Source: Macrostomum lignano (Eukaryota). From it: 64,000 nt of DNA. The notes beneath the pieces were generated by a model. It saw nothing but the letters and a program-made list of their open reading frames with translations. It was not told the DNA's origin and ran no database searches. The stretch covers positions 186,001 to 250,000 of the forward strand of contig NIVC01000424.1 of assembly GCA_002269645.1 (NCBI GenBank). The letters run 5' to 3'. The first letter of the stretch is position 1. The number at the start of each line of letters is the position of its first letter. Positions 1,680-54,051 of this stretch are shown here, piece by piece. The translations under genes and the position numbers were made by a program.

Positions 1680-1863
1680 CTGAGTTGGAATCATGTGCTC
1701 AAAATTTTTGAATGCAATTTTTACTGAGGATTGGAGAGCCTTTGTGTCCGGCTTCTTGGCTGGGGCGGGGGTATCTGCTTTCACTGTTGCTTGAGCGTGT
1801 GCTTTGAGTGTCTGCTTCTGCGAAATGTGTTCTACTAAAGCAAAATATAATCAGTGGGCTCAA

Positions 1864-2888: not shown

Positions 2889-3677
<789 letters not shown>

Positions 3678-4990: not shown

Positions 4991-5169
4991 AGAAATCTAT
5001 ATGAGATTGAACAGTTCCATCGTAGAAACGCAGTGTTCTATCGTTCCACTTCAAGTAATCCTTGATATGCACTCTTATTCCCAGTGATCCCCGTGCATCA
5101 GCACTGCAAAGCAAAATGAGTCGCATTTCAGTGTCTGTCACCTCGAAGGCTCAACCCACAACAGTTCGC

Positions 5170-29178: not shown

Positions 29179-30303
29179 TCACCGGAGCCCGGAGTGCTTG
29201 CGCAGCAGCTCTCTCAGCGAGTTGGCCTCCTCCCTCAGCGAGGCCATCTGGGCCTTCAGCACGGCGTTCTCCTTCTCCAGGAAGCTCGCCCGAACGGCGA
29301 TCTCGTCTTCGCGGTGCTTGCGCGCGTCGCGAGACTTTTTCGCTGCCTCGTTGTTTCGTTTGCGCCGTTCAAAGTACTTAATGTCTTTCTGACTGTCCGG
29401 CACCGGACGCTTGTCCGGGCGGGAGCCGCGACCGCCTGAGGCTGGCGGCGAGCAGCTGCTGCTTTTGCTGCTGCCGCTGTTGGCGGGTGGCGGCGGCGGT
29501 GGCGGAGGCGGTGGCGGTGGCGGCGGCGGCAGCTGATTTGGTGGCGTGGCGCCTTTCGTCACGAGTCCACCGGTGGCCGCGGAGTGATAGACGGTCGATG
29601 ACACGCCCGACAGGCCGTCGCCAAGTGGCTGATGGCACAGCGGGAGGTAGGAAGCGAATGGCGGCTTCAGCTGCTGCTGTTGCTGCTGTTGAGGCTGCTC
29701 TGTCGATAGGCCTTGCTGATGAGGCGGCATCGGCGGGAGTGGCGGCTGCAGGTGATGATGCTGAGTCAGGTGATGCGGATGCTGATGCCGACTACTCACA
29801 GTCAAGTCGTACATGCTCGGCTGCAGGTTATAGTGCTGCTGCTGCTGCTGGTGCTGAGGCTGAGAATGCAGATGATGCAGCTGATGGTGCTGCTGCTGCG
29901 GATGCTGAGGAGGCGATGACTGCAAACTGTTCAGCCCACCGCCGTAGTCTTGAAATGCTGAGCTGAGCATCGGCTGATGATGATGCTGGTGATGCTGAGA
30001 AAGCAGCGAGCTGCCGGGGCTCCAAGAACTGCCCTGCAGGTAGCAGCCGCTGTTGCTAACCAGCTCGGTTGCCGGGGGCGGGTACCGATTGGTTATGCCC
30101 GGGTAGGAACTGCCGCTGCTGTGGAGTGGCGGTGAGACTGAACAGTCAAGATCAAGGAGGTCTTTCTTGGCGACAGAGTCGTTGGCGGTAGATGTTACTG
30201 CAGTCACGGCTGCTGAAGTTGTCGACGCTGATGACACGGTCGATGGCACCGTCAGCTGAGTGAGCCTCGCCGTGGCCGCCACCTGTGAGACCAGACTGTT
30301 CAT
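29179..30303 (-). CDS. Intronless PAR-family / giant-like bZIP transcription factor (374 aa)
   Basis: C-terminal [61 protein letters not shown] matches PAR-bZIP (TEF/HLF/Pdp1) and giant basic-zipper regions; polyQ/H and polyP N-terminal part; GCCATG context. Confidence 0.9.
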
Positions 30304-30856: not shown

Positions 30857-32410
30857 CGGTTACCGCACACAACGCGCATGAAAGATGAGGCAGCCAAGGC
30901 TCCTTTGTCTGCTTTTTTATAATTATTCGCAAGAACTTATTTATTGCACTTACCTCACGCCTGGGATCTTTTACTACTGAAAATAACTGCTATTGAGTGC
31001 ATGTCAATTTTTTTTCGCATACGGTTTAGCTTCTGGTAGAATGCTGATCTTCTAGTCTAGTCCATCTAAATTTTCTTAGCTAAGCCATATATATGCAGTC
31101 TGCCGCTTCTGGCTGAATATACGGCGATGCCAATGTCGAGGGTAGGGAGAGAGAGAAAGAACTCTCACACCCCTCTCGCTCCTAGCTCTCCCCCGTGTTG
31201 AAGGAGAGGAGCTTCTAGCGGGATAGCTAAAGCAGATCGTTTGGGGGGGGGGCCGAGAGCCTGCTGACTGTGCGCAGGCCTGAAGCGCGTGGCCATGCTG
31301 GAATAGTGTGGCGACGCAGTTTAGTCAGGCCCGCACTCGTGCAGGGGGTTAGGGGAGGGGTGCGCAGCGCTAAGCAAGAGAACGAAGGGGTGCTGGGACG
31401 GAGGATGGGGTGGGTGAACCAGACAGTCACCCACCCCAATCTCTCAACCGACGCACAGATGTGGCCCCTTGTCAGTTCTCCAGTTGGGGTGGGGGTCGGG
31501 GGAGGGTGAAGGGCTGCCAGCTAGTGGGGTGGTGGGCGGGGGGCTCTGTCTGGTTTTGAGAGTTGTGGCGTGGCCCACGGACCGATTGCGCAACACAGGA
31601 GTTAGTCAGCCTAGGCGGGCGGTTTTCCAGTTGCAATCTGTAAACATTTTATCGTTATATCGCACGTTGCTGCAAAAACTACACTTGCTGTGAGTTCTTC
31701 AGAGGCCAAATACCAAAAACTGTTTAAAACATTAACTTTCCAAGAATTCAAATAAAGACCAAGCCAATCAATTCTGTAGCAAAAAAGAACAAATTTCTAT
31801 ATGCAACCCGTTAGATATTGTTCTGAAGAGACCCGAAAACTGTTGCAGTAAAGCGGGTTGCAAGCTTCGCAAGCAATTCAGTTATTTATTATTTAATTTC
31901 TGTTGATCAACAAAGTTGGAATTGCATATGATATAACAAGCAAGCAACGCACCGGAGATGGAAGCTTAGCCAATGTTATTAGAACTAGTCTAGAACTGAA
32001 CAACTTTTGTAATGAAGAAGAATTAAGGATAGATTATTTATTTAAAACAGAAGAAAACAACAATAGTCAGAGCAGCAAGAAGCTCACGAAAATGAATACA
32101 AAAAGCTGCGACAAAATTGGTAGAAGTTTATTAATTACGCTGGTAAATTACTTTTTGTTAGCCAACGAAAGATGGCCGCATTAAACAAAACTTAACAAAA
32201 TTATAGAAAAATTATATAACAGCATCTAACAAACTGTCGAGGCCAAGCATTATTTTCGAAGGCAATTTTGATTTTTAATTATATTATTAATAATAATAAT
32301 AATAGTAAGACGCAATAATAACAAAACAGACAATTACACACAGTTCGAGTTTAGGCTGCCCAGAAAAGCAATTTATTAGTTTATGTATTTTTTCGATACA
32401 TATCGGCGAC

Positions 32411-35400
32411 TCAATACTTGCCACCGCGCATGTAGCCGCGCCGGCCGCCCGGCCTGGCGCCGTAGGTGCTCCTAGGCTGGTGCAGCTGCTGCGACATCAT
32501 CTGCATGTGCATTTGCATGCTGTGCTGCATCTGCTGCTGCTGATGCGGATGCTGCAGATGCAGAGGATGGCCAAAACCGACAAAACTGAACCCGCCGGAG
32601 GCGGGAGCGCCAGTGTCCGTGAGCAGCGGCTGTTGCTGCTGCTGCTCAACGCCTGTAACTTCCGACAGCTTTTCAAAGTCGTCCACGTGCATCGACGGCG
32701 GTCTGGAGGTGTTCGGCGGTCGAGAACGGAACGCGTCGTTGACACCGCCGCCGCCGCCGCCGCCGCCCCCAGCACCGCCGCCGCCGCCACCGATACCTCC
32801 GCCGCCGACTCCACCGGGTCCGCCACCGCCGCCGCCTCCGCCAGGGCCACCAAAGCCAGTCCGGAGGCTGAACCCGCGACCTCGCATCGGGGCAACGAAG
32901 CGACGCTGCTGGCTGGTCTCAATGATGGCGTCAAGGCCTTGACGGCGCTGCTTATGCCTCACGGCCTCGTCGTCCGACTGTTGGCCGCCGCTGCCGCGTT
33001 CTAATTCGTCGATTAAGTTCAACGTTGGGCAGGTGGCTCTGGACAATGGTTAAAGTTTGTTTCGATACATATCGGCAATTTTTTGAGCCACCCTGCATCT
33101 AATAATTAATATACACACACAAAACTATATTTCGATACATATCGGCTTACTAAACTTAATAATGAACTAACCTAGCCAACTCATCGAGATCGCATCGCAA
33201 CATCTCGGGCTCTAATTCTGATTCGTCCGGAGCAGCTAATCCGAACCAATAATCCGATTGGAGTCGCTCCTCAGCCTCGGCCTGGTTGAACCCGGCGCTG
33301 GTGGTGAACACGGCTCTCTGCTGGAACACCACGGCCAATGGCTGCGGTTCAGGCAGCTCGGGTGGACGAGTCACAGCCGGTTCACCGTCTGGCGCCTGTT
33401 CCAGCATCTGAATTAAACTGTCCATGCTCTCCAATAGGCCTTCTAAACTGGTCTCATCTTTGACGTATTCGCACAGCAGGTGGTGCAGTTCGTACACCGT
33501 GTGCCGCTCCGGTTGAGTCTCGCTAGCCGGGCGCCAATCTAGCATAGTTTTCACTTCGCCAACTGTGACAGCTTGACTGCGCAGCGGCATGGCTTCGCCT
33601 TCGAGTGTTTCGGTTGTAATCATAGCTCGCAGTAGTTCAAGAGTAGTGAGAAGAGTGTTTAGACAGTCCGGGTTTTCTCTAGTAAACGTTTTGTTCACCC
33701 GGCGCATCAGGTTTAGAAATACTTCGCTGGAGTCCGCCACGCATCTGCGGAAGGTTGGTTTGGGTAATAAAAATAATAAAATCTGCTAATCGTCTACTGA
33801 CAGTAGAGATGTGGAAATATTGTCGCTATTTCAAAAAAGCTCTAGCTTCTAAATACATTGACGGCCTGTCTTAGTATCCATCTTAGCGCCCTACAGTGTC
33901 CCAGGTGTCTGTCTTAGTGCCTAATTTAGAGTCTACCTGTCTCTCTGCCTGTCTGTCTGCCTATCTGTCTGTCTCAATGTCTGTCTCTTAGCATCTGTCT
34001 AACTGCCTATCTCAGTGTCTGTCTCAGTGCCTGTCTCATTACCTGTCTCAGTGTCTGTTTTGCCTGTCTGTCCCAGTGTCTGTCTCAGTGTCTGTCTCAG
34101 TGTCTGTCCCAGTGTCTGTCTGAGTGTCTATCCCAGTGTCTATCCCAGTGTCTATCCCAGTGTCTGTCTCAGTGTCTATCCCAGTGTCTGTCTGAGTGTC
34201 TGTCCCAGTGTCTATCCCAGTGTCTGTCTCAGTGTCTATCCCAGTGTCTGTCTCAGTGTCTGTCTGAGTGTCTGTCTCAGTGTCTATCCCAGTGTCTGTC
34301 TCAGTATCTGCCTCAGTGTCTGTCTAGTAGCTGTCACCCGCAGGCCACACAACCGCAATGGGCACTCACTGCTTGACCAGACAGAAGCCGGCATCGTGTT
34401 CGGTGAGCAGCACCAGCACCTTCAGGCACAGGTGCACCGTGGCCAACTCGCTAGTCGGCTCTTTGACGTGACGGAACACGGCCTCAGCGGCTGAAGCCAG
34501 CTGCTCAGATGGCGGGATGCAGTTGGCCAGAGTCTGCCAGGTGATTCGCTGACGGCCGGATTTGGTCAGCGGCATCTCCAGAGCGATGCTCGGGTCCAGC
34601 AGAGACACCAGACAGCCAATCAGCTGCTCCTGACAGCGCATCAGCTGGTCCGGCACCAGGCTGGCTGATAGAAGGCGCTGCGGATCGCGGTTTGGGATTT
34701 AAAGTTTATTTTCACATTTGGGATTTGAGTACATATTGACAGAGTTGGGATTTGAGTCCATTCTGACAGGATTGGGATTTGAGTCAATTTTGACACATTT
34801 GGGATTTGAGTCAATTTTGACACATTTGGGATTTAAGTCCATTTTGACACATTTGGGATTTGAGTTCATTTTGAGACATTTGAGATTTGAGTCCATTTTG
34901 ACACAGTTGGGATTTGAGTCAATTTTGACACATTTGGGATTTGAGTCCATTCTGACACGTTTGGGATTTGAGTCAATTTTGACACATTTGGGATTTGAGT
35001 CCCATTTGACAGAATTGGGATTTGAGTCAATTTTGACACATTCGGGATTTGAGTTCATTTTTAAACAGTTATGATTTGACTCCATCTTGACGCATTTGGG
35101 ATTTGAGTCAATTTTGACACATTTAGAATTTGAGTCCCAATAGAACACAGTTGGGATTTGAGCCCCAATAGGACACATTTCAGATTTGAGTCCATCTTGA
35201 CACATTTGGGATTTGAGTCCATTTTGACACATTTGGGATTTGAGTCCATTTTGACACAAGAGTCCAAACCTTGGCGATGATGTAGAAATCCCTAGCACAC
35301 AAAGGAGCAGGATTAGCAGCAGCATTGGCAGCAGTGAACACTGAGGTCTGCGGCGGCGGCGGCTCCATAGCCAGTCGAAGGAAAGCCAGTTTAACAGATG

Positions 35401-38400
35401 CTACTGACAGTAGGATGTTAAGCCCATTCAGTGCGCGAGTCACTTCACCAGCGTCTGGCTGAGGATCTTTGGCCGCGGGCTCGGACAGCAGGGGCGGCAC
35501 GATAACATTGCCGGCATTGCTTAGAAGCGATTGCGGATGCTGCTGGGGCGGTTGCTGCTTAAGCTGATCCTCCTGGGGATGCGAAGGTTTAGATTGTGCT
35601 GTTGCTAGTGTTAGACACTAGTGTTTATACAGACTGTTAGACACTGTCAAAAACTGAATTCTATGTTAGATACTGAACGTTTTTATACACCGAATCTCAC
35701 CAGACACTAAATCCCACCTGTTAGGCACTAAATCCCACCTGTTAGACACTAAATCTCATCTGTTAGACACAAAACTCCACCTGTTAGACACTAAATCCCA
35801 CCTGTTAGGCACTAAATCCCACCTGTTAGACACTAAATCTCATCTGTTAGACACAAAACTCCACCTGTTAGACACTAAATCCCACCTGTTAGACACTAAA
35901 TCCCACCTGTTAGACACTAAACTCAACCTGTTAGACACTAAATCCCACCTGTTAGACACTAAATCCCACCTGTTAGACACTAAACTCCAACTGTTAGACA
36001 CTAAATCCCACCTGTTAGACACTAAATCCCACCTGTTAGACACTAAATCTCATCTGTTAGACACAAAACTCCACCTGTTAGACACTAAATCCCACCTGTT
36101 AGACACTAAACTCCACCTGTTAGACACTAAATCCCATCTGTTAGACACTAAACTCCAACTGTTAGACACTAAATCCCACCTGTAAGACACTAAATCCCAC
36201 CTGTTAGACACTAAATCCCACCTGTTAGACACTAAACTCAACCTGTTAGACACTAAATCCCACCTGTTAGACACTAAATCCCACCTGTTAGACACTAAAC
36301 TCCAACTGTTAGACACTAAATCCCACCTGTTAGACACTAAATCCCACCTGTAAGATACTCTCAGACTCAACCAAAGCAACCCTTACCGTCCCAGCCTTGC
36401 GCGCCTCCCAGGCAATGAGCAGCCGATCGTACGGCTCCCAGGCGTCCAGTAGGATTCGAACTCCCAGCTCAGCCAGCATGTTGGCAGCCGGAGCTGATAA
36501 ATCGCCAATCTGAGAAGCCACCCGACGCAACACCTGGCTAACAAAGGGATTAGTTGAGCCGCCAATAAGTCGCAGCAGGTTGCCAATCTGTTTCGACAGG
36601 CACAGCATGTGAGCGCTGGCGAGTTTGCGAAGATTGACGCAGGCGCTGAGCTCGGATTCTGTTACCTGTAATTTGATTGCGGGATTTGGCTACTTCTGCT
36701 TCAGCTGAGGCCTGGGAGTATGGGATTCTTATATCAAGAATTTGTGATACTCTTATTGTGTACGTGGGCAGCACGTGATTTGAGAATTTCAAAGTTTGGG
36801 ATTTATGGGATTTCAGGATGTCGGAGCATGGGATTTGAGAATTGCTCAGCATGAGATTTGAGGATTTCTGGGCATGGGATCCGAAGATTTCTGGGCATGG
36901 GATTTGAGGATTTCTGAGCATGGGATTTGAGGATTTCTGAGCATGGGATTTGAGAATGTCTGAGCATGGGATTTGAGGATTTCTGAGCAGGGGATTTGAG
37001 GATTTCTGAGCATGGGATTTGAGGATTTCTCAGCATGGGATTTGAGGATTTCTGAGCATGGGATTTGAGAATTTCTGAGCATGGGATTTGAGGATTTCTG
37101 AGCATGGGATTTGAGGATTTTTCATCACGGGATTTGAGGATTTTTCATCACGGGATTTGAGGAATTCTGAGCATGGGATTTGAGGATTTCTGGGCATGGG
37201 ATTTGAGGATTTCTAAGCATGGGATTTAAGGATTTTTCATCACGGGATTTGAGGCTTTCTGAGCATGGGATTTGAGGCTTTCTGAGCATGGGATTTGAGG
37301 ATTTCTGAGCATGGGATTTGAGGATTTCTAAGCATGGGATTTGAGGATTTCTAAGCATGGGATTTGAGGATTTCTGAGCATGGGATTTGAGGATTTCTGA
37401 GCATGGGATTTGAGGATTTCTAAGCATGGGATTTGAGGATTTTTGAGCATGGGATTTGAGGATTTTTCATCACGGGATTTGAGGAATTCTGAGCATGGGA
37501 TTTGAGGATTTCTGAGCATGGGATTTGAGGATTTCTAAGCATGGGATTTAAGGATTTTTCATCACGGGATTTGAGGCTTTCTGAGCATGGGATTTGAGGA
37601 TTTCTGAGCATGGTTTTTGAGGATTTCTAAGCATGGGATTTGAGGATTTATAAGCATGGGATTTGAGGATTTCTAAGCATGGGATTTGAGGCTTTCTGAG
37701 CATGGGATTTGAGGATTTCTGAGCATGGGATTTGAGGATTTCTAAGCATGGGATTTGAGGATTTTTGAGCATGGGATTTGAGGATTTTTCATCACGGGAT
37801 TTGAGGAATTCTGAGCATGGGATTTGAGGATTTCTGAGCATGGGATTTGAGGATTTCTAAGCATGGGATTTAAGGATTTTTCATCACGGGATTTGAGGCT
37901 TTCTGAGCATGGGATTTGAGGATTTCTGAGCATGGTTTTTGAGGATTTCTAAGCATGGGATTTGAGGATTTATAAGCATGGGATTTGAGGATTTCTAAGC
38001 ATGGGATTTGAGGATTTCTGAGCATGGGATTTGAGGATTTCTGAGCATGGGATTTGAGGATTTCTAAGCATGGGATTTGAGGATTTTTGAGCATGGGATT
38101 TGAGGATTTTTCATCACGGGATTTGAGCATTTATGAGCATGGGATTTGAGGATTTTTCATCACGGGATTTGAGGATTTCTGAGCATGGGATTTGAAGATT
38201 TATAAGCATGGGATTTGAGGATTTCTAAGCATGGGATTTGAGGATTTCTGAGCATGGGATTTAAGGATTTCTGAGCATGGGATTTGAGGATTTCTAAGCA
38301 TGGGATTTGAGGATTTATAAGCATGGGATTTAAGGATTTCTAAGCATGGGATTTGAGGATTTTTGAGCATGGGATTTGAGGATTTTTCATCACGGGATTT

Positions 38401-41400
38401 GAGCATTTATGAGCATGGGATTTGAGGATTTTTCATCACGGGATTTGAGGATTTCTGAGCATGGGATTTGATGATTTTTCATCACGGGATTTGAGGATTT
38501 CTAAGTATGGGATTTGAGGATTTCTAAGCATGGGATTTGAGGATTTCTGAGCATGGGATTTGAGGATTTCTAAGCATGGTATTTGAGGATTTCTGAGCAT
38601 GGGATTTGAGGATTTCTAAGCATGGTATTTGAGGATTTCTGAGCATTGGATTTGAGAGCTTGGGACTTGATGCTTTCTGAGAAGCTTGAAGATATTGTAA
38701 AAAGGGATTAAAATATTTATTAGATCACAAATAAAAGTCTAGAAAACAGCCTGACCTTGGACCCAGTCCTAATATAGATTGGCAGCGGCAGTGGCAACAG
38801 TTCGCCCAGAATAGTCAGGCCGGCCAAATAATAGCAAGGCGCTGACACAGTCAACTCCAGTACATGTTTCAACGCTTTAGTCCACTGAGAATCGTCTAGC
38901 GCGCGTTCGTGATCACCAGCTGGCGGCAGGGCAGTCTGACTGAATGCCAGATAGCTGTCAATCACACCAGTGTGAATCTGGGAAATCACCTGGGCGTACA
39001 ACAGCGGCAAACTAGCCGATGGGAAACTGCAAGCCACGGCGAATGCGCGAAATAAGCAATCCAGCATAGTGTAGTTGTTGAACCGCGAGCCCATAGCTTT
39101 GATAACGCTCTGCAGTAGCACCGCTATGGTCTGTATAGCCGGCTCCAGTGCCAGGAGAGACATCAGGAAATTGTCGTCTAGAAAGTCCGTGCCTTGTTGC
39201 CAGGGCAGGGTGAGCTGCGGATGGGGGAAAGTTTAGCAGCTTATTTTCAATTCTGCTTTTGTCTTGTTAAAAATTAATTAGGGATGAGTGAGTTGCGTGA
39301 TGGGATAAGGGTGAGATGGAGGCAGGTGAGAGGATGAGAGGTAAGGGAAGAGTTGGGGAGAGTTGAGAGGGAGTGAGTTGGGTGAGAGGGAGAGTGAAAA
39401 GGAGAGTGATAGGGTGAGAGGAAGAGTGAAGGAGGCTGAGAGGAAGAGTGAAGGAGGCTGAGAGGAAGAGTGAAGGAGGCTGAGAGGAAGAGTGAAGGAG
39501 GCTGAGAGGAAGAGTGAAGGAGGCTGAGAGGAAGAGTGAAGGAGGCTGAGAGGAAGAGTGAAGGAGGCTGAGAGGAAGAGTGAAGGAGGCTGAGAGGGAG
39601 GGTGAGAGGGAGGGTGAGAGGAAGAGTGAAGGAGGCTGAGAGGAAGAGTGAAGGAGGGTGAGAGGGAGGGTGAGAGGGAGGGTGAGAGGAAGAGTAAAGG
39701 AGGCTGAGAGGAAGAGTGAAGGAGGCTGAGAGGGAGGGTGAGAGGGAGGGTGAGAGGAAGAGTGAAGGAGGCTGAGAGGAAGAGTGAAGGAGGCTGAGAG
39801 GAAGAGTGAAGGAGGCTGAGAGGAAGAGTGAAGGAGGCTGAGAGGGAGGGTGAGAGGGAGGGTGAGAGGAAGAGTGAAGGAGGCTGAGAGGAAGAGTGAA
39901 GGAGGCTGAGAGGAAGAGTGAAGGAGGCTGAGAGGAAGAGTGAAGGAGGCTGAGAGGAAGAGTGAAGGAGGCTGAGAGGGAGGGTGAGAGGGAGGCTGAG
40001 AGGAAGAGTGAAGGAGGCTGAGAGGAAGAGTGAAGGAGGCTGAGAGGAAGAGTGAAGGAGGCTGAGAGGAAGAGTGAAGGAGGCTGAGAGGGAGGGTGAG
40101 AGGGAGGGTGAGAGGAAGAGTGAAGGAGGCTGAGAGGAAGAGTGAAGGAGGGTGAGAGGGAGGGTGAGAGGGAGGGTGAGAGGAAGAGTAAAGGAGGCTG
40201 AGAGGAAGAGTGAAGGAGGCTGAGAGGGAGGGTGAGAGGGAGGGTGAGAGGAAGAGTGAAGGAGGCTGAGAGGAAGAGTGAAGGAGGCTGAGAGGAAGAG
40301 TGAAGGAGGCTGAGAGGAAGAGTGAAGGAGGCTGAGAGGGAGGGTGAGAGGGAGGGTGAGAGGAAGAGTGAAGGAGGCTGAGAGGAAGAGTGAAGGAGGC
40401 TGAGAGGAAGAGTGAAGGAGGCTGAGAGGAAGAGTGAAGGAGGCTGAGAGGGAGGGTGAGAGGGAGGGTGAGAGGAAGAGTGAAGGAGGCTGAGAGGAAG
40501 AGTGAAGGAGGCTGAGAGGAAGAGTGAAGGAGGCTGAGAGGAAGAGTGAAGGAGGCTGAGAGGAAGAGTGAAGGAGGCTGAGAGGGAGGGTGAGAGGGAG
40601 AGTGAAAGATGGTTAGAGGTTGATAGGAAGGCGATAAGGCGACCGGTAGCTATAGCAGAGCACAGCACCAGGTGAAGGAGACCTAAGTGTTGGCATATAT
40701 AAGCAATAAACAAAAAGACACAAAAGCTAACCTGATCAACCAGCCTTGTGGCAATCCTCACAAGCAGGTTGAGCCCGTCGGCGCTAACCAGCTCAGCCAG
40801 TGCGTACTGATAGCGCAGCTCGGTGACTCTCGGCTCCAGCGCGTGCGGACACCACAGCCTGGGAGTCTCTCTGGCCCGGAACGAACCGGGAGCCACCGTT
40901 AGAGTTTTCAACAGTCGCAACAGGGTGACCAGGCCTGGCGGGCAGGGTGAATGGTCCAAGCAGTCTGACCAGGTCTTCAAGCTGGTCAGCAGGGCTGGCA
41001 GCTGGTCCAGATTGTATGGCGGCCGGATTGTCTGCCGAATGGCCGAATGGTGGTTTGTTTTTTATATTTACAGAGCACTACCGATATGTAGCGTAGCTAA
41101 TTTAATTTTCGAATTGGATACCGTCATCTGACTGCTAGTAAATTGGGATCGGGATCACACAGGATTTGGGACCGGGAAACCAGGATCCCACAGGATTTGG
41201 GGATCGGAAAACTGGGATCCCACAGGATTTCAGGATTGGGTTCTCACAATTTTTTTGGATCAGGATCCGACAGGATTTGGGGATCCGGATCCCACAATAT
41301 TTTGGGACCGGGAAACCGAGATCCCACAGGATTTTGGGATAGGGAATCCGGGATCCCACAGGATTTGGGATCGGAAAACTGGAATCCCACAGGATTTTGG

Positions 41401-44400
41401 GATCGGGAAACCGGGATCTCACAAGATTTTGGGATCGGGTAACCGGGATCCCATAGGATTTGGGATCAGAACAATGGGATCCATCAGGATTTAGGGATCG
41501 GGAAACCGGGATCCCACAGGATTTAGGGATCGGGAAACCGGGATCCCACAGGATTTAGGGATCGGGATCACACAGGACTCTATTACTGGAGACAAAAATC
41601 GATTCGATTACTAATTATTACCTTGAGTGGAGCCAGCCAATCAGCCAGTTCACTCAATCGGCTACTACTCGCAGACTTTCCACTGCCGCTTCCAGTAGCA
41701 GCAGAAGAAGCAGAACCAGCAGACGTTGTTGCTGTCTGTTGCTGCTGCTGTTGTTGTTGCTTCTTCCGGCCAGCCCCGGCCACCACGGCCAGCAGTCTGT
41801 CGCCGCATTTGCCAAACAGGCCGCCAACAAATTGGTCACCGTCAGCGTAGCGCAAACACGCGGACAGAATTGACAGGCAGTAGCTGCGAGTTGCGGAGCG
41901 GTAGCGTTTCTGCTGCTGCTGCTGCTGCTGGCGCTGTCTTTTAGCAGAAGACGGCGCATCGGAAGCGCCGGCAGCAACAACGCTAGAGGACTCTAGAAAT
42001 GGCAGCAATACTAGCATGCTCTCTTCTGTAAGCAGCAATTCCGCTAGCCAACGACCAGCCTGAGGCGCAGAGGCGGACATCAGATACAGTTCATGCAGAC
42101 TGGCCACGGCCTCGCTTGCCAACTCGTCTAGCAGGCCGGCCTGCTGCTGAGCTGGACCAGTCGATGACGAAGGCGACTGCGGCGGCGAAGACGACTTGGC
42201 ATCGTCAGAGGCGGCGTTGGCGAGCATCAGCCGGCGCAGTTTGTGATGCACCAATAGCCGATCAATATGGCCAACAGTGAATAATTTGCAGATCAACTGC
42301 AAACCAAGCGCTGACCAATCTGCTGGCGCTGGCGATTTATTTGCCTCCTCGTCATCGTCTCCATCATCGTCATTGGACTCCTGCTGGTTCGCCTGCTGCT
42401 CTTTGTTGCCATTGTCTTTGTTATTGTCCGAGTCGGGATTTAGCTCCGGACTTAGGCGGTAGATTATAGCCTGTAGGTAGAGTTTCAGGTGCAAATTTGT
42501 GCTTCAGGGTTCAGGCCCTCAGGAGAGGGTCTAGGAAGCTTCAGTGTTGAAGACCTCAGATAAAGCTTCAGAGAACAGGGTTCAGGGCCTCAGGACCAGC
42601 TTTAGAGAACAGGGTTCAGGACCTCAGTACAAGCTTCAGAAAAAAGGGTTCAGGACATTAAGACAAGCTACAGAGAACAGGGTTCAGGAACTTCAGGACA
42701 AGCTTCAGCGAACAGGGTTCAGGACATAAAATAAAGCTTCAGAGAACAGGGTTCCGGACATCAGGACAAGCTTCAGAGAACAGGGTTCAGGAACCTCAGG
42801 ACAAGCTTCAGAGAACAGGGTTCAGGACCTCAGATAAAGCTTCAGAGAACAGGGTTCAGGACATCAGGACAAGCTTCAGAAAACATGGCTCAGAATATCA
42901 GGACAAGCTTCAGACAACAGGTTTCAGGAACCTCAGGATAAGCTTCAGACAACAGGGTTCAGGAACCTCAGGACCAGCTTCAAAAAACAGGGTTCAGGAA
43001 CCTCAGGACAAGCTTCAAAGAACAGGGTTCAGGACATTAAGACAAGCTTCAGAGAACAGGGTTCAGGAACTTCAGGACAAGCTTCAGCGAACAGGGTTCA
43101 GGACATAAAATAAAGCTTCAGAGAACAGGGTTCCGGACATCAGGACAAGCTTCAGAGAACATGGCTCAGAATATCAGGACAAGCTTCAGGGAACAGGGTT
43201 CAGGAACCTCAGGATAAGCTTCAGCGAACAGGGTTCAGGACATAAAATAAAGCTTCAGAGAACAGGGTTCCGGACATCAGGACAAGCTTCAGAGAACATG
43301 GCTCAGAATATCAAGACAAGCTTCAGGGAACAGGGTTCAGGAACCTCAGGATAAGCTTCAGACAACAGGTTTCAGGAACCTCAGGATAAGCTTCAGACAA
43401 CAGGTTTCAGGAACCTCAGGATAAGCTTTAGACAACAGGGTTCAGGAACCTCAGGACCAGCTTCAAAAAACAGGGTTCAGGAACCTCAGGATAAGCTTCA
43501 GACAACAGGGTTCAGAAACCTCAGGACCAGCTTCAAAAAACAGGGTTCAGGAACCTCAGGACAAGCTTTAAAGAATAGGGTTCAGGACATTAAGACAAGC
43601 TTCAGAGAACAGGGTTCAGGAACCTCAGGACAAGCTTCAGAGAACAGGGTTCAGGACATCAGATAAAGCTTCAGGGAAAAGGGCTCAGGACCTCAGGATA
43701 AGCTTCAAGGAACAGGGTTCAGGAACTTCAGGACAAGCTTCAGAGAAAAGGGTTCAGGACATTAGGACAAGCTTCAGAGAACAGAGTTCAGGACCTCAGG
43801 ACAAGAAGAGGGCTCAGAATGTCATCCATAAAAGCTGTCTAGCAGATAAAAACATAAACCCGACCTGAAGCAGCAGCGGCTGAGCAGCCAGGTACTGCAC
43901 CCCGTGATCCAGGCTGAGCAGAGCCTCCAACAGACCGCAGGCGGAGTGCCGGACTCGCTGCAGTCCAGGCCGGGGCCGGGGCTCGCACACGGCGTGTCGA
44001 ACGCAGTCCATCAGGCGAACAGAATTGAAGTAATGATACAGATCTGGATAGGGGCTGTAGGGCCGCTGGGTCTGTTCGAAGCACACTCCGGCTGGTAGGC
44101 AACGTCGAGGATGACCGATCGACTGAGGCGCATTCAGATAGGCCAAGCGAATGTCAGCTAGAGCGGACGACAGCCTGTCAGCTATGGCTGACAGCTCCTT
44201 GTCGGCTGCGGCCTGCTTCTGCTGCTGACTGGCTGGTGCTGTTGAAGAATCTGCAGCTGGGTTTGCATCGTCTGCCGCTGCTGCTGCTGCTGATGCGGCC
44301 GCTTCGGCTGCTGCACTGCGTTCGGCCTGCGGAGAGGCAGAGTGCAGAAATGAGATTGGCTGAGTAGCTGAAGGATTGGCTGAGTAGCTGAAGGATTGGC

Positions 44401-47400
44401 TGAGTAGCTGAAGGATTGGTTGAGTAGCTGAAGGATTGGCTGAGTAGCTGAAGGATTGGCTGAGTAGCTGAAGGATTGGCTGAGTAGCTGAAGGATTGGC
44501 TGAGTAGCTGAAGGATTGGCTGAGTAGCTGAAGGATTGGCTGAGTAGCTGAGGATTGGCTGAGTAGCTGAGGGATTGGTTGAGTAGCTGAAGGATTGGCT
44601 GAGTAGCTGAAGGATTGGTTGAGTAGCTGAAGGATTGGTTCAGTAGCTGAAGGATTGGCTGAGTAGCTGAGGGATCTGGAAGGCTGGCCCGGCAACTGAT
44701 GATCTGTGGAGAGTGGCGGTGGCCCCCACCCCTGCAAAGTAGCACGGCACTGACCTGTTTAAACTGGTGAAACAGAGTCCGAAAATCCAACAACGATTCG
44801 TACAGATGCAGCTTGTTCAGCAGGCAGCCCATGGCGGCCACCACTCTGGCCGTGTGCTTCTGGTAAAACATTGCCAACAGTCTTTTGTATGGCGTGTCCA
44901 AGTCCATTCTGGCCAAGCATTTTCGCATATGCGTCAGATCGTCTTCGCCAAGTACGCGCGGCGGTTCGATGTACTTTTTACCTGAATTGGAAAATTTAGG
45001 AAAATTAGGAAAGTTTAACATTTGCCTACTGCAAGTAGGATAGGTGAAAATTGCAAGTAAAATTTAATAAATAGAGACAAACAATGGCTTCAAAAATGAG
45101 ATACTCTAAAGTAATTTTCTATTACTTTGGAAAAAAACTATTGATAAATAACTTAACTACTTACAGTACTCGTACTACATCGTCCAAACTTAATATTAAA
45201 TTTTACAATAGAAAATCTATACTTTCGATACATATCGGCAATTGAAAATTAAAGATAGTTAAAATCTCACCTCCTTCCGATTGTTGCTGCTGGGCGGCAG
45301 CGCTAACGGTACTACTGCTAGTAGCTGATTCGGACGTCACTCCAAGAAAAGCGTCAGCCCCGGCCGCCAGTCGAACTGAGCTGCTTAGCGCTCGAACAAT
45401 TAACAATTTAACAGACGTGGCCATGTGATCAGCCGATAGCAAATCCAGCAGCCTATGCTGAACAGATTTAGCCAGTAGTCTCGCACTGATTCGCTGATCT
45501 AAAGTACACAGCATACCGGCTAGGCTCAATCCAGCCTTCAAGTGTCTCATTATAAACGTATTAGCGTCTTGTTGTTGCTGCCTCCGAGCTGCCTGTAAGT
45601 CTAGGCCTTCCAGCGTCCAGTCTACCAGAGTGTCCATAGTAGTCTCAAACTCTGCCAGGTTGATGCTTTCAACAAAGGCCAGAGCGCCAGGCAGATAAGT
45701 AGGCAGCTGCTCCAGCTGTTCAATCCACTGCCAATTATGACTGGCAGGTTCCGCGTAGCGACTAAGCAAGTCGGCTAAACGGCTGGCAGCCTCTTCGCAT
45801 CGCTCCTCATCCTGGGTGTTGATGACTGGCTGCGCGGAGTCGTACAGGAGCTTTTTCTCCACCTGTACAATTTGTGCAGCAGATTATTGAAACTAAGATC
45901 ACGGACTAAACTCATTAGGACAATTTATTAGATTCCCCGACATAATCTGAGAATCTCACATCTCCCACAATATACATGCCCTAATATAAGCCCTAGCGCG
46001 AGAGGTCTGGCCAAGGTAAGACGCAAACAAAGCCGACTCGAGAAATACAGACGTAGTACTAACTAGCTGACGAGTAACTTAGCCTTATTAATACAGTCAT
46101 AGTTACTCCTGCCGTTTATCCAAATTTTTACTTGGGTGACGTTTTCATTTTGGGTCAACAAGTGAATCACCTCAAAAGCGGTCAGGCTCGGATCCGAGGG
46201 GAACCGCAGTTCCCTGAGCCGACACCGCTCGGGCCTGAACGCCAGCGGAAACCCCAGCTCGGCTTCGCTGAGCTCCTGCGGCATCGTCGAAGTCGTTGAA
46301 TCGACCGACTGCTCGCCCGAACTAGTCAACAGCTCCTGCTCGTCATCGGTGCACCAGCTGACATCGTCGGTAACGTCAGCAGCATCGGCAGAATCCTCTT
46401 CCTCGGCTGGCCGTTTAGTTTGGCCAACCGCGCCGGCAATAAGCGGCGCCATCGACATCGAGCCAACTGGCAGCTGAGGCGAACGAGGCCGCGAGCTCTG
46501 ATGAGGCATCTGATGTTGCTGATGCTGCTGCTGCTGACGCCTGAAGTCAAAGTTGCCACCGCTTCCGCCGCCTCGATAGCGACTAAACACTGACTGATGC
46601 TGCTGCTGTTGCTGCTGATGGTGAAACGAATGCGGTAGATGGTGAGGCGGTTGGCTGGAAGTTATAGCGGGTGGAAGCTGCTGTTGCTGCTGCTGCTGCA
46701 TCGATATATGATGAGGCGGCAGAGGAGGCGGCGGCAGAGGCGGTGGCAGTGGCAGTGGCAGCGGAAGCTGCTGTTGCTGTTGTTGAGTCATTGGAACTTG
46801 AAACTGAGACTGATGATACATCTGCTGCTGCTGCTGGAAGGCAGACATTGGATTTGGCAGGGACATTGGCGGCGGCAACTGCGGTGGAGGCATCAGTTGC
46901 TGCTGCTGCTGCTGCGAGGATGGTGGTGTCAAAAATGGAGCCTTGCTAGCCCCGCTCGGCGCGGGGGTGCCAAACACGCCCAGAGTGAGGCTACTATAAG
47001 TGCCGCGAATCACAAGCAGGTCAGTGCAGGAGTCGCTCAGACTGCAACTGGTATGACCGGATCGTTCGTCGTATTTGAGATCGCCGACTTTTTCAAAGGT
47101 GGCAGCTTCTGGGCCTCGGCGGGCGAAGAATTCCACATTGAACTGCGAAGGCCCAGTAAGGCCAACCATCGGCTCGGAGCGCTGCAGTTCGCTCTTGATG
47201 GCCACGCCGAATGGCACAATGCGGGCCTCTCGTAGGCGAACGCTTGGATTGAATAGCACAGTGTCGCATTGCACTTCCTGCGAATATGAAGCAATTGATT
47301 ACCTTAGCCTTTGATTCTCCGTGCATTGCTCACAAGATATCAAACTATTCATTAGGCCTTAATATTGTAATATCTGTTGGGTTCCTACTTAGTGGTTGGA

Positions 47401-50400
47401 CAAAATCCTGATCCCAATCCTGACTTCTGAGGATCTGATCTTCATAGTTTAACATTGAAAAAAACTGGAAAAGATGGGTCAAATTTGATAGTATGAGCGA
47501 GTTTAGTGGGAAAATAGGCCCCTACCATTTTTAATAAATGCAAATTTGACTTTTAGATGTACTTTTCTGAACATAGGCAATTTTATAGATTTAACTATAG
47601 GCCTAGTATATATCCTAATTAAGTATGCTAAAGTTAAAAAATCTTAGATATGCCCTTATTTTGTAAAGGGAAATGGTTGAAGTCATCATATGATAATTTT
47701 TAATATTACAATTTTGATTGTATCAAATCCATTTATGGGACAGTGTGTCTTGCTCACTTGGTATAGTGCTATCGCTATCCTATATGAGTAATCACAGCCA
47801 ACTACTTGCTTCAAGAATTGATTATAATGCAATTAGTGATAGCAAAATATATAAGTTGGCCCTGCTAAGTGCAAGCAGCCCTTTAAATTATTTTCATGTC
47901 TATCTAGCACCATATTGTGGCATTGACTTTTCTACATTAGTGTGCAAGCAACATCTTACAGACAAATAGAGTTCCTTATTTTTACTCTATCTTTTGCATA
48001 TAAACTGGCAAGTAATGGGACCCTTATTGAAGTCCCTTTTTTACTTAAATTTGCCTTTCTGCATGCATATTAGCAAGTCATAGACATGGCAACCCATATT
48101 GTAGGTTCTGTTTTTTTTTGAATGCCAGAGAATGTATTTGGCTAGCTAACAAAGTGCATATCAACAAACTAAATCAGTAGATTATATTAGTATTAGCAGA
48201 GTAAAACAATGAAGAGTAGAATAGTGCATATAGATAAAAAAGCAAAATCTCATTTTAAAAATTGGTAAATTAAAACATTGCTATACATTATTGATTATAA
48301 AATATTGTTTTTTTAATAATTATCAATTCTCCAAACTACAGTATTATTTAATCGATCTAATTTAGTGTTAAAAAAACACTACCATTAAAAAATTCATTAC
48401 ACAATGATATCAAAACTTTAATATATGCTAGCTATATTGTTAAAATATAATGTTTTGTAATGGTACACTAAAATGTCTTTTGAAAAGTCCTTCAACTTTG
48501 CAAATAAGTTTCCCAAGAAAAGTTTATAAAGAATGTTTATAAAAAATATTATGAATTATTCCTATTTTAAACAAAAAACACAAAAAATATCAATGCATAA
48601 CTAGAGTTTTCTGTGATTAAATGCTAGAAATTTTCAAACCTAAATGGTTTTCTGAAACTGAATCTACCTTGTCATCTAATTAATGATCTAATTAGTATCA
48701 CACATAAATTGACTGACAATATTCTATTTGTTGCAGGGTTAAAATATATCTATCTAAGTAAAAATAAGTAAGTTTGAATAGAACATATTCTTATATATCT
48801 AATCTAACTAATTCTAACTATTAATACTAATTGATGTTACATTTGTATAACTTGATAATTTAATAACTTTACTGTAAGTCTATGCATTTGCATTTTAAAT
48901 GATTAATGAATATACTTAAACAATCTATATACTTAATTACTTAAAATGGTTTTGCAACTTTCCAAAGTTGGTTTAATGTCTCAAAGGTCTTTAAGTTTAG
49001 TAACTTTACTTAATATAACTTTCTTTAAATACTAATGCAAAACAGACAATTTTAAAAATGAATGACCTTTTAATTTTTTAAATTTAGCTTCTTATTTCAA
49101 AAGTTTTATTTCTTTTATGCCTGAATTTATTTTGGTTTCTTGATTCTTTTTCATATTTAGAAACACATTTAGAAATATTCATAGAAAAAATTAAATTCTA
49201 AACATTCTTATTGATAATAAAGGTAGTGCATCCCTAGGGCACCAAAGAATAATTTTTATCTTATTCCTAAAGTACCATGTGAATAATTTTTGTTTTATCT
49301 ACATGGTATACTAATAAGATAATTGCTTTATCTTTTATAAAATGTTTTATTTACTTAAAATACGATTTAATTTTTATTTCTACAAAACCAGCTATGAATT
49401 CTTCTTATTAGTATCTATAAGAAGATAGGATAGACTTGGCTTGTTAATAACTTATAAATAACTATTTTGTCATTGTGCTATGCAAATAAGATATTAATTT
49501 TTCATTATAATATCTATAGCCAAAATTTCAGGGTGCAGCCGAAATTGTCATATTTAAAATCATCATATGATGATGACGACTTGAACAAATCTTGAAGACT
49601 TAAACATTTAAATATGACGACTTTGACCAAAGGCAAGGGTGTATTAATTTTGGATTTTTCTACCTTTGGGCAAAAATCCCTTGCATATGCACCCGTAATT
49701 TTTATATTAACTGTGTCAATTAATGCTGATTCACCCCTGATTGCTGCATCAGCAATCAGGGTCGGCGTTGCGTTCGCGCAAATTAATCCAGAGAAATTGC
49801 GCAGACGAATCACAACAAAATTTTCTTTCTCCTGCTTACTCCGACAGCCGGGTTCTCAAGTCTTATAAATCTAATAAAACTATAAAATAAAACTAACAAG
49901 TCTAAAGTGCGCAAAACTAATAAAAAAATTTGAACTAAACTGTCGAACGCAAAAAGAAAAAGACAAGAAAAAGGAAAAAGGGGTTGAAAATTAGGCGGCA
50001 TATCAAGGCAGTATAAATATTAAAAAAAGGAGGTTACAATCAACGGGTGGGGGTGCCGCTAGACACACTACTGGACCAAAAATCCCATGCGTGGAGACTA
50101 CCGATGGAACGGCTCACAAACATGCAAGCAACAAAATTAAAACAAAAGTTTTGACCAAGATTTGACCAAGACCTACTTTTCCAACCAAAGGAAGAACAGA
50201 ACAATTTCTGGAACCTCTAGTCAATGGAAATGTGACAAAAATTGAACAATGAGCGGACAAAAATTAAACATTTGTAGCAGTTTTCCTTTTAAATGAGTTA
50301 TTAAAGTAATGGTTATTAGTTCACAAATATCAATTAAGTGGCACCCGACTGCCACACATGACTACTGAGAATACACTATAAATTGTTTTAATTTGTTGGC

Positions 50401-51457
50401 AAACAAGAACACGCTGCCGCCATGAGCTAAGATCCTTGCGCAGCCAATGCAACATAATATGACGATTTAGTGAATGCAGCATTGTCCAATACTGAGATGA
50501 TGACGATTTAGATAATTTAGTTGTTTTTCTCGTAAGCCGCAGATGACGATCTCGAATATGACGACTTCGGCGGGAACCAAATTTCAAATCTGTTACATAG
50601 TATGCCAAAAAAGTGAACCCTTCACCATAAGTAAGGAAATGGTTTAATAGTCTATGCCAGAAAAACAAATTTACTTGTGATATATATGCCAAACATACTA
50701 GGAAAATGTTACAACAATGTAGGACACTTTTGAATTATTGTATCTTTTGTATACCAATAGCTATACCATATGCTAGCAGCTTTGTAATGCAATTTTCTGC
50801 TAGATATTTATGCCAACCATTTTTTCATGTCCATTGTATGCCAAAAATTTCTAGCATATATATAAGATTAAAAATGGCATAGGAGTCTATAAGAAAATAA
50901 AAAAGCTATCTTGTCAGTTTGACATAAAAATAAGCAAAATATTATTCCCATGGTACTGTAAGAATAAGACATAAGTTATTCCTATGGTAAAAAAGGGGAT
51001 AAGCTTTGCCTTCTAAAAAAGTAAGACATTTTTAATTCAAATTAAAAATTTAATAAATAGGCCTATTCAAATCCTATATACTAAAAATTCTAAGTCCTAA
51101 CTTTAGTAAAAATGGTATTGATGCAAATTTTAAATTTAAAAACAAAAAGAAAGCTGGAAGTATTAAATAAAAGAAATATTCCAAACAAAAAATTAAATAG
51201 TACAAAATGCAGTAGGCCTAGCCCTAGGTCTAAATGGTCACAATTAAATTAATAATAGCAAATTTTCTGATTGTTAGCTTTTGCACAATGCCAATGGCAC
51301 ATCGATATCACTTTAATTAATGTCTAAACGCCTATTTCAGCAACTGCAATAATGGTCATTTTTTGCCTTAAATAAAAATGCTTACCTCGTGAGTTTCTAT
51401 TTCTTTTTGATGTGCAAAATAGTCTAAGAACAATAGACAGACTTCTTCGCTTGTCAT
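32411..51457 (-). CDS. VIRMA: Virilizer / VIRMA (KIAA1429), m6A writer complex subunit, 13 exons, about 2065 aa
   Basis: Exons 51457-51386 (MTSEEVCLLFLDYFAH, cf. LLFLDTFKH), 47277-46132 (VIR_N: CDTVLFNPSVRLREARIVP...LVIRGTYSSLTLGVFG), 45862-45271, 44981-44755, 44326-43865, 42470-41622, 41031-40732, 39214-38756, 36665-36387, 35572-35270, 34677-34370, 33744-33172, 33038-32411 (NTSRPPSMHVDDF). All junctions are GT/AG with matching phase; total 6198 nt, divisible by 3. Confidence 0.94.
33935..34327. repeat. 12-bp minisatellite (CAGTGTCTRTCY) in a VIRMA intron
   Basis: Direct tandem repeat. Confidence 0.93.
34692..35260. repeat. 27-bp minisatellite (GGGATTTGAGTCMATTTTGACACATTT)
   Basis: About 20 copies in a VIRMA intron. 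Confidence 0.94.
35690..36358. repeat. 21-bp minisatellite (AATCCCACCTGTTAGACACTA)
   Basis: About 31 copies in a VIRMA intron. Confidence 0.96.
36795..38660. repeat. 23-bp minisatellite (GGGATTTGAGGATTTCTGAGCAT), about 80 copies, with 322-bp higher-order blocks
   Basis: Direct repeat; identical ORF-track peptides recur at 322-bp offsets (37420/37742, 37548/37870). Confidence 0.97.
39300..40615. repeat. GA-rich about 22-bp minisatellite (GAGAGGAAGAGTGAAGGAGGCT) mixed with GAGAGGGAGGGT
   Basis: Direct tandem repeat in a VIRMA intron. Confidence 0.97.
41144..41577. repeat. About 32-bp minisatellite rich in GGGATCCC palindromes
   Basis: GGGAAACCGGGATCCCACAGGATTT units. Confidence 0.92.
42503..43810. 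repeat. 33-35-bp minisatellite (CAGGACAAGCTTCAGAGAACAGGGTTCAGGAACCT)
   Basis: About 38 diverged copies, each with AAGCTT, in a VIRMA intron. Confidence 0.95.
44352..44672. repeat. 20-bp minisatellite (TGAGTAGCTGAAGGATTGGC)
   Basis: About 16 copies in a VIRMA intron. Confidence 0.97.
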
Positions 51458-54051
51458 TATAATTCAAATAAAAGCCTAGCCTATACTATATATCAGTTAA
51501 TATACTAATGTAGCAATATAGAATAGTCATATAATGATTGCACAGATTACGTTTATTAGTATAGTATAGTATTATGTCAACAGGCCCGATGTTGTTATCA
51601 GTCAGTCAACTTGATGATTTGATAATAATGGCCACAACAGTTATTTTAAAAACGAAAACTAAATATGTTTCCTGTAAAGACTGTTTTTAACATGACATAG
51701 TTTTTTTCCAGTCTATTCGCATAAACCTGAACTATAAAAAAATCTTTTAAGCAATTTTATAGCAAGCTTTTTTGACGAAGTATTTCAGTCGATTGTAATT
51801 TTTTGTTCCTTTAACGATAAAGAGGTTCCACAGGGAACGATAATTCAACTTGAGGATGGAGTAGGGCATTCATGACTCTATATATTGCAACCCAACCAAA
51901 TTAATTAGTTGGCATGTTTATAAGTTGAGATTGCGACCTAACATGCCTCTGAGCCTATCAACATAATCAGAATGCAATTTAAGATAGGCCTACTTATAAT
52001 ACATACGAGCTTTAAAATAAAAAGACAGTTTTAAATTTAAATAACCTTGCTTAGGCCACCATACAACAGGTATACATATCATACGACTTGGCACATGTAC
52101 GAGTTATGCTTATTTTATTTAATAACGAAAAAGTGCAGTGCACTAGCCTAGTCTTGGTTTAGCTCAAAACAGACTTATAAAATAATATTGCTAGATAAAT
52201 AAATAATAATATTAATAATGGGTGGCTAGATGATACTATTGCCAAAATCCAAATTAAAAAAATGTCTCATATTTTAGAAATATGAAATGGATTGGAATTT
52301 TTTCTAAATCTTTCCAAATGTGCTTCTGAATAATTTCATGAAACAATTAACAAAAAAACTTAATTTCCAAGTCTATCCAGTATCCTCTTGAATTAGATTC
52401 ACTAGATAATAGATAGGCCTAGATAAAATAGATCCATTTTAGTCAATTCATATTATTTATGAAACTAATTAGATCATTAAGGCCTTAATAAATGACAAAG
52501 CATTTTTAACTCAAAAAATAGTATAGTTACTTTTAATATTAATATTTTTATTTTACATTGTTATTGGAAAATTACTAAATATTTAGATTTGAATTTTAAA
52601 ATGTTTTTGTACATTTAGATTTGGTTTTAAAAACTTACAAAAATCTATATTTGATCTATTACTAATAAAATCACAATGTTATTTTATTATTAATAAGCTC
52701 TAGCTATAGGCATTAGATTAGATTAAAGATTAGCAAACTATAGCTTATAGACTATATATAGCCTAAAAAAGCCTTTCTATTAGACTTTTAATAAGCCTAG
52801 ATTCTTTGTTCAAGCCAAGCTTAAGTTTATTGTTGGGTAAGCTAATAATAATAATAATAAAATTCAAATAATGAATTCAAACTTGAGTAGTAGTGTTTAT
52901 TATTGGCTATTATTACTTATTAGACTATATATTTATAAATAAATTATTTTATAAAAAGTATAAAAATCTTATCATCTTTTTCTTGGAATAGGCCTACAAT
53001 AATGTATATATATATTACATTACAAGTTACCATCAGATAGGCTACTGAATCTTATTAACTACTCAAAAGTCAAGTATCAAGAAATATGATAGAAATTTCT
53101 TGAGCTTTAGTATGTAAAAATAATAGGATTGAATACCTTTGAGTTGAGTAATCTTATGGACTCTACTCTATTTAGCCTCTAGCCTAGGTCTTGAAACTGT
53201 AATAGTAATCTACTAGTTAGCCTGTTAAAGCATTCCTTTTTTCTTCCTTATTAATATTATCTTTCTTTCTATTATCTCTAGGTTTTTTGTGTGAAATTTG
53301 TGCCCTTGCCATATTTTTCCCAAAACTTTGAAGGCTAAGTGTCATTTTGGCATATATTTATTTTCAATTTGGCACATTCTCTTTTGAGTTTTGAGTTAAA
53401 AAAACTAAAGACCTCAGTAGAATTGCTGCAACAAAAGAAAATTTCTAGCTCTAAAAATTTATTTGTGTCAGATAAATTGTTTTTTAATGTATCATAGACA
53501 TAGTCACAGGCACATTAAGTTTCAAAATAGCATACATTTTTGGGTAAGTTACCATATAGTACATATTTTCAAATGAAAAAACCTGCTTATCTCTTTTTGC
53601 TATTCTTTTTTTTGCTCTCTTATCTTTCATAAAACATGAGTCATTAACCATTAGCTAGATTCTTAATCTGGCCCTTGCAGTAAAAAAAGTTTGCTTACCA
53701 TTGCACTAGATCAAGACTAGTTATATGTATGTAAATTATGATTGCTCTTATTACAATAAAAGTTTTTTTTATTTCTTATTTTACTAAATATAGCTTGTAT
53801 AAGCAATCAATGCTCATCAAAATGTATTTTTTAGCCACTGAATATGTTGTCCCTATTATCCATTGATTATGCTAACTAAATTAATTTCTAGATATGGGGT
53901 CTTCTAAGATAGCAAACTAGAAAGATTATAATACAATGTACATCATAATATTTATAAATAATGCTATTCAGTACCAAGTTATTATGTCCTATGTACTAAT
54001 ATCTTATTTACAACAATATTGATTCTAAAAATTGCCAACTTCTGCAGCAAA

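Follow-up and report, generated by a model that had tools for sequence, protein, structure and literature searches.

A 17-nucleotide word repeated four times in non-coding sequence of the Macrostomum lignano virilizer/VIRMA gene: a candidate gene-specific RNA element

Why should the same 17 nucleotides (nt) stand four times inside a single gene of the flatworm Macrostomum lignano, close to splice sites and to a stop codon? The gene is virilizer/VIRMA, which encodes a scaffold subunit of the N6-methyladenosine (m6A) methyltransferase, and the window, that is, the whole 64-kb stretch of DNA analysed here, belongs to contig NIVC01000424.1 of the NCBI assembly GCA_002269645.1 (Mlig_3_7 assembly). 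We found that the word TTTCGATACATATCGGC has exactly four exact matches in this window, starting at 32391, 33060, 33130 and 45223, all of them on the + strand, and that no further sites exist at up to 3 mismatches. A first-pass annotation of the DNA had reported these four co-oriented matches and had argued that they are not due to chance; our search confirmed the former and the latter holds as well, with 0/100 dinucleotide shuffles reaching four matches (shuffle mean 0.07). Once tandem arrays were masked, the 17-mer was the sole exact dispersed word of at least 14 nt with more than two copies, and its family the sole full-complexity dispersed word of at least 11 nt with at least three copies. 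The repeat is thus real, statistically solid and local to the gene, and a repeated 17-mer in a flatworm VIRMA gene is so far undescribed. The four copies are also present in an independently fetched public record and are therefore not an artefact of the window. Mlig_3_7 is a long-read based and redundant assembly (PMC5730564), yet an assembly or sequencing artefact seems to us very improbable, as the motif matches no adapter known to us and the copies lie in gene sequence that is unique and well structured and has its splice sites intact.

All four copies lie in one transcription unit and in one orientation. The gene is read from the minus strand, and the copies, named A to D by coordinate, are placed in it as follows.

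32391-32407, minus strand: copy A (sense GCCGATATGTATCGAAA), in the 3' untranslated region (3'UTR) of about 55 nt; it starts 3 nt after the stop codon TGA (32411-32413) and ends 13 nt before AATAAA.
33060-33076, minus strand: copy B, towards the 3' end of the last intron, with 21 nt between it and the last exon.
33130-33146, minus strand: copy C, in the 5' part of the intron that also holds copy B, starting 25 nt after its donor GT.
45223-45239, minus strand: copy D, in intron 2; it starts 31 nt after the donor GT.
32372-32377, minus strand: AATAAA polyadenylation signal, 3' of copy A.
32411-33038, minus strand: last coding exon, encoding the Gly/RGG-rich C-terminus of Vir, with copy B upstream and copy A downstream.
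33039-33171, minus strand: last intron (intron 11), 133 nt, GC 0.32, array-free, holding copies C and B.
44982-45270, minus strand: intron 2, 289 nt, GC 0.26, array-free, holding copy D and no partner for it.
32411-47326, minus strand: virilizer/VIRMA coding region, with 12-13 exons and 8 introns that each contain a private minisatellite array.

The distances to the stop codon, the last acceptor and the two donors that had been given beforehand (3, 21 and 25/31 nt) are correct. In addition, the likely branch site (CUUUAAC) follows copy B after about 8 nt, and from their positions copies B and A bracket the last exon with its Gly/RGG-rich C-terminus. All copies are confined to array-free non-coding sequence, namely introns 2 and 11 and the 3'UTR of the transcript; such sequence amounts to 2.2 kb of the 15-kb gene. 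The flanks of the copies had been described as unrelated, and this was borne out apart from 21 nt that copies B (33060) and D (45223) have in common (…GGCAATT); beyond them the flanks share nothing and the boundaries of the copies are sharp. The best flank similarities were found for C and D on the downstream side (p ~0.01) and for A and B on the upstream side (0/500 shuffles), neither of them convincing after correction for 12 comparisons and for offsets. From start to start the copies are 669, 70 and 12,093 nt apart, with unrelated sequence in between. A tandem (minisatellite) repeat is ruled out by these spacings, and Tandem Repeats Finder gives no array at the copies.

The identification of the host gene as VIRMA, made at first from the letters alone, is supported by Pfam, whose VIR_N family (PF15912) matches the first large virilizer exon (E = 1.7e-13), and by a VIR_N protein of M. 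lignano in UniProt, which is identical to the window over the virilizer exons and maps onto it with canonical GT-AG introns. The public annotation contains a 2026-aa VIR_N product with the same stop as the gene in the window. Protein searches for homeologous or orthologous virilizer loci gave this M. lignano gene copy alone; a representative search gave it again along with distant VIRMAs, and relatives of VIRMA length were among what it found. The closest other match of that search was located on a 544-nt TARA scaffold. Our spliced 2026-aa Vir reconstruction, obtained by enumerating splice sites, had no match in the cluster collection searched. The word-indexed protein search missed the M. lignano VIR_N protein, in which the 191-aa query occurs identically, and its negatives for virilizer carry little weight. 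Twelve introns interrupt the gene; besides the eight with a private minisatellite each, there are four array-free ones, namely a 25-nt candidate micro-intron, intron 1 (269 nt), intron 2 and the last intron.

Two features of the gene model deserve mention at this point. At its 5' end (47277-47326, minus strand) no in-frame ATG is found directly upstream of the first large exon (EVQCDTVLF…). The start may be provided by the 25-nt intron (47302-47278), which would join this exon to ATGCACGGAGAATCAAAGGCTAAG, or else the acceptor ttcgcag/GAAGTG may be a spliced leader (SL) trans-splice site, with the leader supplying the in-frame AUG; many mRNAs of M. lignano are SL trans-spliced (PMC5730564). At the 3' end, retention of the last intron (33039-33171, minus strand) would close the frame after 5 codons (…R LVHY, then stop) and the RGG-rich C-terminus would be lost. 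Three successive stops (TAA, TAG, TAA) end right at copy C, and the normal stop likewise has copy A within 3 nt. Nearby stops are expected in AT-rich introns, and the adjacency of stop and motif may mean nothing.

What, then, could the word do in the transcript? On the sense strand two G·U pairs, formed where the central U-G faces G-U, make its core CGAUAUGUAUCG self-complementary. At the DNA level the core CGATA-TG-TATCG forms an imperfect palindrome, which confirms the inverted repeat (5-2-5) noticed in the first-pass annotation, and as RNA the 12 nt of the core are palindromic in the sense strand alone. According to our computations, any two sense copies can form 12 contiguous base pairs with an energy of -15.8 kcal/mol, and the duplex of antisense copies, with an internal C·A/A·C mismatch, reaches -11.4 kcal/mol. 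It had been suggested that each copy folds into a 4-bp RNA stem. The inverted repeat behind this suggestion stands, but the computed hairpin of a single copy is marginal (-2.1 kcal/mol), and the relevant property is the pairing of one copy with another. When the last intron was folded alone, a helix between copies C and B (11-12 bp) appeared in both the minimum free energy (MFE) and the centroid structures. With 30-nt exon flanks included, the C:B helix had an ensemble probability of ~0.53 on the sense strand versus 0 on the antisense strand, and the MFE structure was without it. Such a helix is predicted to bring the 5' splice site next to the region of the branch and 3' splice sites.

Extending the search of the window to 5 mismatches, the closest other sequences differ from the 17-mer at 4-5 positions and are unrelated to it, except for one inverted match.

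41080-41096, plus strand: ACCGATATGTAGCGTAG, a degenerate copy in inverted orientation, located in intron 5 at 48 nt from the acceptor; 13/17 match, with 11/12 in the core.

This sequence had been pointed out earlier near 41082. It does exist, but with a chance expectation of ~0.1-0.3 it is compatible with chance. In the sense RNA, 11 pairs in a row could form between it and any copy of the motif, and possibly this too is a chance match.

Exact identity, sharp boundaries at the same positions, a single orientation, the restriction to non-coding, array-free sequence of one transcript and similar offsets from two donors together look like a selected recognition element, and the same features are awkward for fragments of repeats or for repeated independent template-switch events. 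We tentatively favour, with less than even confidence, the reading in which the virilizer transcript carries the 17-mer as a discrete cis-element specific to this gene, read as sense RNA GCCGAUAUGUAUCGAAA. In this sense, the copies would jointly affect how the last intron is spliced out and/or how the 3' end is formed around the last, RGG-encoding exon, and copy D would link the upstream intron 2 in the same manner. The route may be direct pairing between copies, which for the last intron we favour at about even chances, or the binding of one common factor; across the reading as a whole, copy-to-copy pairing and a common trans-acting binder appear about equally likely. As for their origin, local copying would have produced the copies, and selection would have kept the 17 nt intact amid unrelated flanks.

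Several observations weigh against a selected RNA element of this kind. The orientation bias alone has p = 1/8. Pairing covers the central 12 nt only and not the invariant GC… and …AAA ends, and for pairing across 0.7-12 kb, 12 bp including two G·U pairs make a short helix. Intron 2 contains no second copy with which D could pair, and of the four copies only A remains in the mature mRNA. Regarding thermodynamics, the folding energy of the last intron is no better than that of shuffles (z = -0.39), that of intron 2 is ordinary (z = -0.68), with only a local hairpin there, and flank complementarity does not exceed that of shuffled flanks for any pair of copies. Also, the homeologs are ~6% diverged and four identical 17-mers could simply be young; because the homeologs differ by only ~6%, identity alone is weak evidence of constraint.

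More specific versions of an RNA function can be formulated, in which the word would be a self-pairing "RNA palindrome" module, acting as a switchable network that tunes the isoforms of the m6A-writer scaffold, or a set of fixed-5'-end targets of a dedicated small RNA. We consider them distinctly unlikely. The network would be based on the complementarity of each copy to every other on the sense RNA: C:B pairing would close up the last intron, a B:A helix would place the RGG-encoding last exon in a loop, and D:C/B would bracket exons 3-11, as in circular-RNA (circRNA) biogenesis. The first-pass annotation had also raised the possibility of autoregulation by m6A, which is unsupported, and the motif itself as an m6A site is ruled out, given that it contains no DRACH (no AC occurs on its sense strand).

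Pairing of this type has parallels among known systems. Intron-bridging complements, as UB1/DB1 of yeast RP51B or the intronic repeats of circRNAs, also place two complementary elements within one intron, one close to its 5' splice site and the other close to its branch/3' splice site, and circRNA-promoting repeats place complementary elements in two introns that flank a block of exons, as D does with respect to C/B. The complementary boxes of such systems are able to pair on the pre-mRNA, and in virilizer pairing is predicted on the sense RNA only. Unlike those systems, virilizer has direct repeats of one self-complementary 12-mer in place of two different boxes, a short helix (12 bp, two G·U), an ordinary folding energy and a fourth copy in the 3'UTR. 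The docking-site/selector systems of Dscam1 and 14-3-3ξ, which serve mutually exclusive splicing in arthropods through RNA-RNA pairing, resemble our case in having several short intronic copies in one gene. Their selectors, however, are degenerate, are all complementary to one docking site and stand before alternative exons, whereas the virilizer copies are identical and self-complementary and come without a cluster of alternative exons.

Are the copies instead recognised by a third party? In this alternative they are targets of one trans-acting RNA or RNA-binding protein and not of each other; taken by itself it is unlikely, and we count it within the favoured reading. One candidate binder is an antisense small RNA beginning UUUCGAUACAUAUCGGC. 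In agreement, the whole 17 nt are invariant, beyond the palindrome, and a boundary that is sharp on the 3' side of the target, with two copies extending 4 nt further on the 5' side, is what one would expect if a guide RNA had its 5' end fixed; U is the first base of the motif's antisense (UUUCGAUAC…). Nevertheless, no candidate guide is encoded in the window, over whose entire length Rfam (including miRNA/mirtron models) gave 0 matches at the gathering threshold. A second candidate is offered by the spliceosomal small nuclear RNAs, given that CCG/AUAUGUAUCG resembles a 5' splice site with A at +1. The motif matches the general U1-complementary consensus CAGGUAAGUAU at 8/11 positions (p = 0.018 in shuffles); this match, in the same register as a 7-nt complement to U6 CGAUACA, is jointly attained in 5e-5 of motif shuffles, a post hoc figure. 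The U1 and U6 sequences compared with the motif are general ones and not from M. lignano. Against U1 binding, the match has at most 4 contiguous pairs and no G at +1, and the comparisons were picked after the sequence had been viewed. Donor-like sequences just upstream of a poly(A) signal on the sense strand are known as U1-binding elements of terminal exons, as in the late 3'UTR of papillomavirus, where they inhibit polyadenylation or export; an export effect of 5'-splice-site-like elements in terminal exons has been described (PMC4380460). Copy A differs from them in having A and not G at +1 and at most four contiguous U1 pairs, and the resemblance itself comes through general consensus sequences and a post hoc test. 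The third candidate is cleavage factor Im (CFIm), which would bind UGUA ~20 nt upstream of AAUAAA. Copy A has this UGUA in the position of CFIm-binding upstream elements, but UGUA is just 4 nt long.

Could the copies have arisen with no function at all? The M. lignano genome is recently duplicated, and repeats account for more than half of it, with 15% of the genome in tandem and simple repeats (PMC5730564). The homeologous contig NIVC01000106.1 aligns to the window at 90-95% identity, arrays included, with a divergence of ~6%. The window contains ~34 different minisatellite arrays with periods of 4-89 nt and up to 118 copies, which occupy ~40% of it (for example at 16934-18925, 24424-26188, 36805-38656 and 61588-63604; in the 21.8-kb locus of NIVC01000106.1, at 1-5704 of that locus). 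The same arrays stand at the same places in the homeologous contig and hence predate the genome duplication. In such repeat-prone surroundings, the 17-mers may be a neutral by-product of local copy-paste mutation, by template switching or templated repair insertion and perhaps favoured by the palindrome, that is, young copies without function. We regard this as unlikely. In its favour, at ~6% divergence young copies would still be identical, all of them are local and co-oriented, and we found no thermodynamic or flank-complementarity signal of selection. On the other hand, neutral copying needs three independent events that copied the exact same 17 nt with the same boundaries, and one copy stands 12 kb away from the others. 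Furthermore, the window has no other dispersed short duplicates of this kind, which means that the copying process is not visibly active here.

A similar question concerns mobile DNA, since the 17-mer might be a piece of a genome-wide interspersed repeat, or an ultra-short mobile element or its footprint, landed four times in virilizer. The repetitive nature of the genome gives some room to this explanation, and so does the discrete unit with its near-palindromic core, as in miniature inverted-repeat transposable elements (MITEs) and Tc1-mariner footprints; we take its centre TA-CA-TA to resemble a classical Tc1-type excision footprint at the TA inside CGATATCG. Even so, we think it quite unlikely. 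No copies are present in the ~49 kb of the window outside virilizer, nor in 21.8 kb of NIVC01000106.1, a locus that stops ~15 kb short of virilizer. None of the four copies is accompanied by a duplicated flank that would indicate a target-site duplication, and the sole inverted repeat is the internal 5-2-5 core, with no terminal inverted repeats beyond it; extended similarity, longer relatives in the window and variable truncation points are equally missing. The orientation is single throughout, 17 bp is far below any known transposon and several-fold shorter than any MITE, and a footprint would leave the four identical 17-nt contexts unexplained. The 17-mer had 0 matches in a viral contig collection, and a metagenome scan returned 98 single-copy matches, mostly from human gut and at chance level, both results being uninformative in themselves. 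In the literature, queries with both strands and the RNA form of the motif returned only unrelated primers, and the M. lignano genome paper makes no mention of such an element (PMC5730564).

Recognition at the DNA level is another possibility. The site CGATA-CA-TATCG might bind a dimeric or multi-finger protein and form an intragenic enhancer or insulator cluster, which might serve the downstream bZIP gene (29179-30303). A 5-2-5 inverted repeat is typical of dimeric factors, an exact 17-bp footprint fits recognition by multiple zinc fingers, and copy A stands between virilizer and that bZIP gene, the upstream region of which begins just past it. We hold this reading to be improbable. A DNA site requires neither a fixed orientation nor restriction to transcribed DNA, yet both are seen; clusters of binding sites normally show a degeneracy that the identical virilizer copies lack; and the palindrome becomes perfect in the sense RNA only. 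The comparison with Drosophila DREF/BEAF-32 targets made in the first-pass annotation has no basis in a flatworm. CGATA does occur twice and inverted, as in those sites, but they are degenerate promoter elements, the virilizer copies are identical and lie in introns and the 3'UTR, and the DNA replication-related element (DRE) TATCGATA occurs 0 times in the window; DREF and BEAF-32 sites are thereby ruled out, and the Drosophila factors named do not apply to M. lignano. BEAF-32 is not known outside Drosophila. The probability left over from all these readings belongs to something that we have not considered.

If the favoured cis-element is functional, it would constitute a very compact and unusually exact cis-regulatory RNA module for the scaffold subunit of an m6A methyltransferase, in which a self-complementary direct repeat could replace inverted-repeat pairs in joining splice sites. 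If the pairing network or the small-RNA target is true, it would add a new and compact kind of element for the post-transcriptional control of a specific gene, in a flatworm. As transgenesis is possible in M. lignano, the element is directly testable. Should the 17-mer turn out to be a common repeat or a neutral copy of recent origin, it would be one more product of repeat-generating processes in a repeat-rich, recently duplicated genome, and of little wider interest.

Other parts of the window gave some minor observations. In an EML (EMAP-like) gene (13906-24374, plus strand), the annotated 498-aa product stops at TGA 23490-23492 in an apparently tiny terminal exon (…GHGRLRAD, then stop), and WD-repeat coding sequence continues at 24081-24374, right before a 1.8-kb (GGAGAGGGAGAGGGC)n array; the product may be a truncated isoform or the annotation may be truncated. 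Our best splice reconstruction of this gene had no match in the protein collection searched. An open reading frame at 5170-8124 encodes a 968-aa thioredoxin-domain protein; exact matches of this frame and of the bZIP frame (29179-30303) place the window on contig NIVC01000424.1, and the homeologous contig NIVC01000106.1 came to light via the thioredoxin gene cluster. Upstream of virilizer, an AT-rich block (47683-53143, GC 0.26-0.32) contains several inverted-repeat pairs, among them 33-nt arms at 48680-48712 and 52448-52480 (85%) and 32-nt arms at 47683-47714 and 49542-49573 (91%), which may be transposon remnants. Finally, an MRPS25-like gene (54019-54952, plus strand) needs a change of frame between …EHVRNIL and NTEEVAEENL…, which either a small intron or a single-base assembly error would explain.

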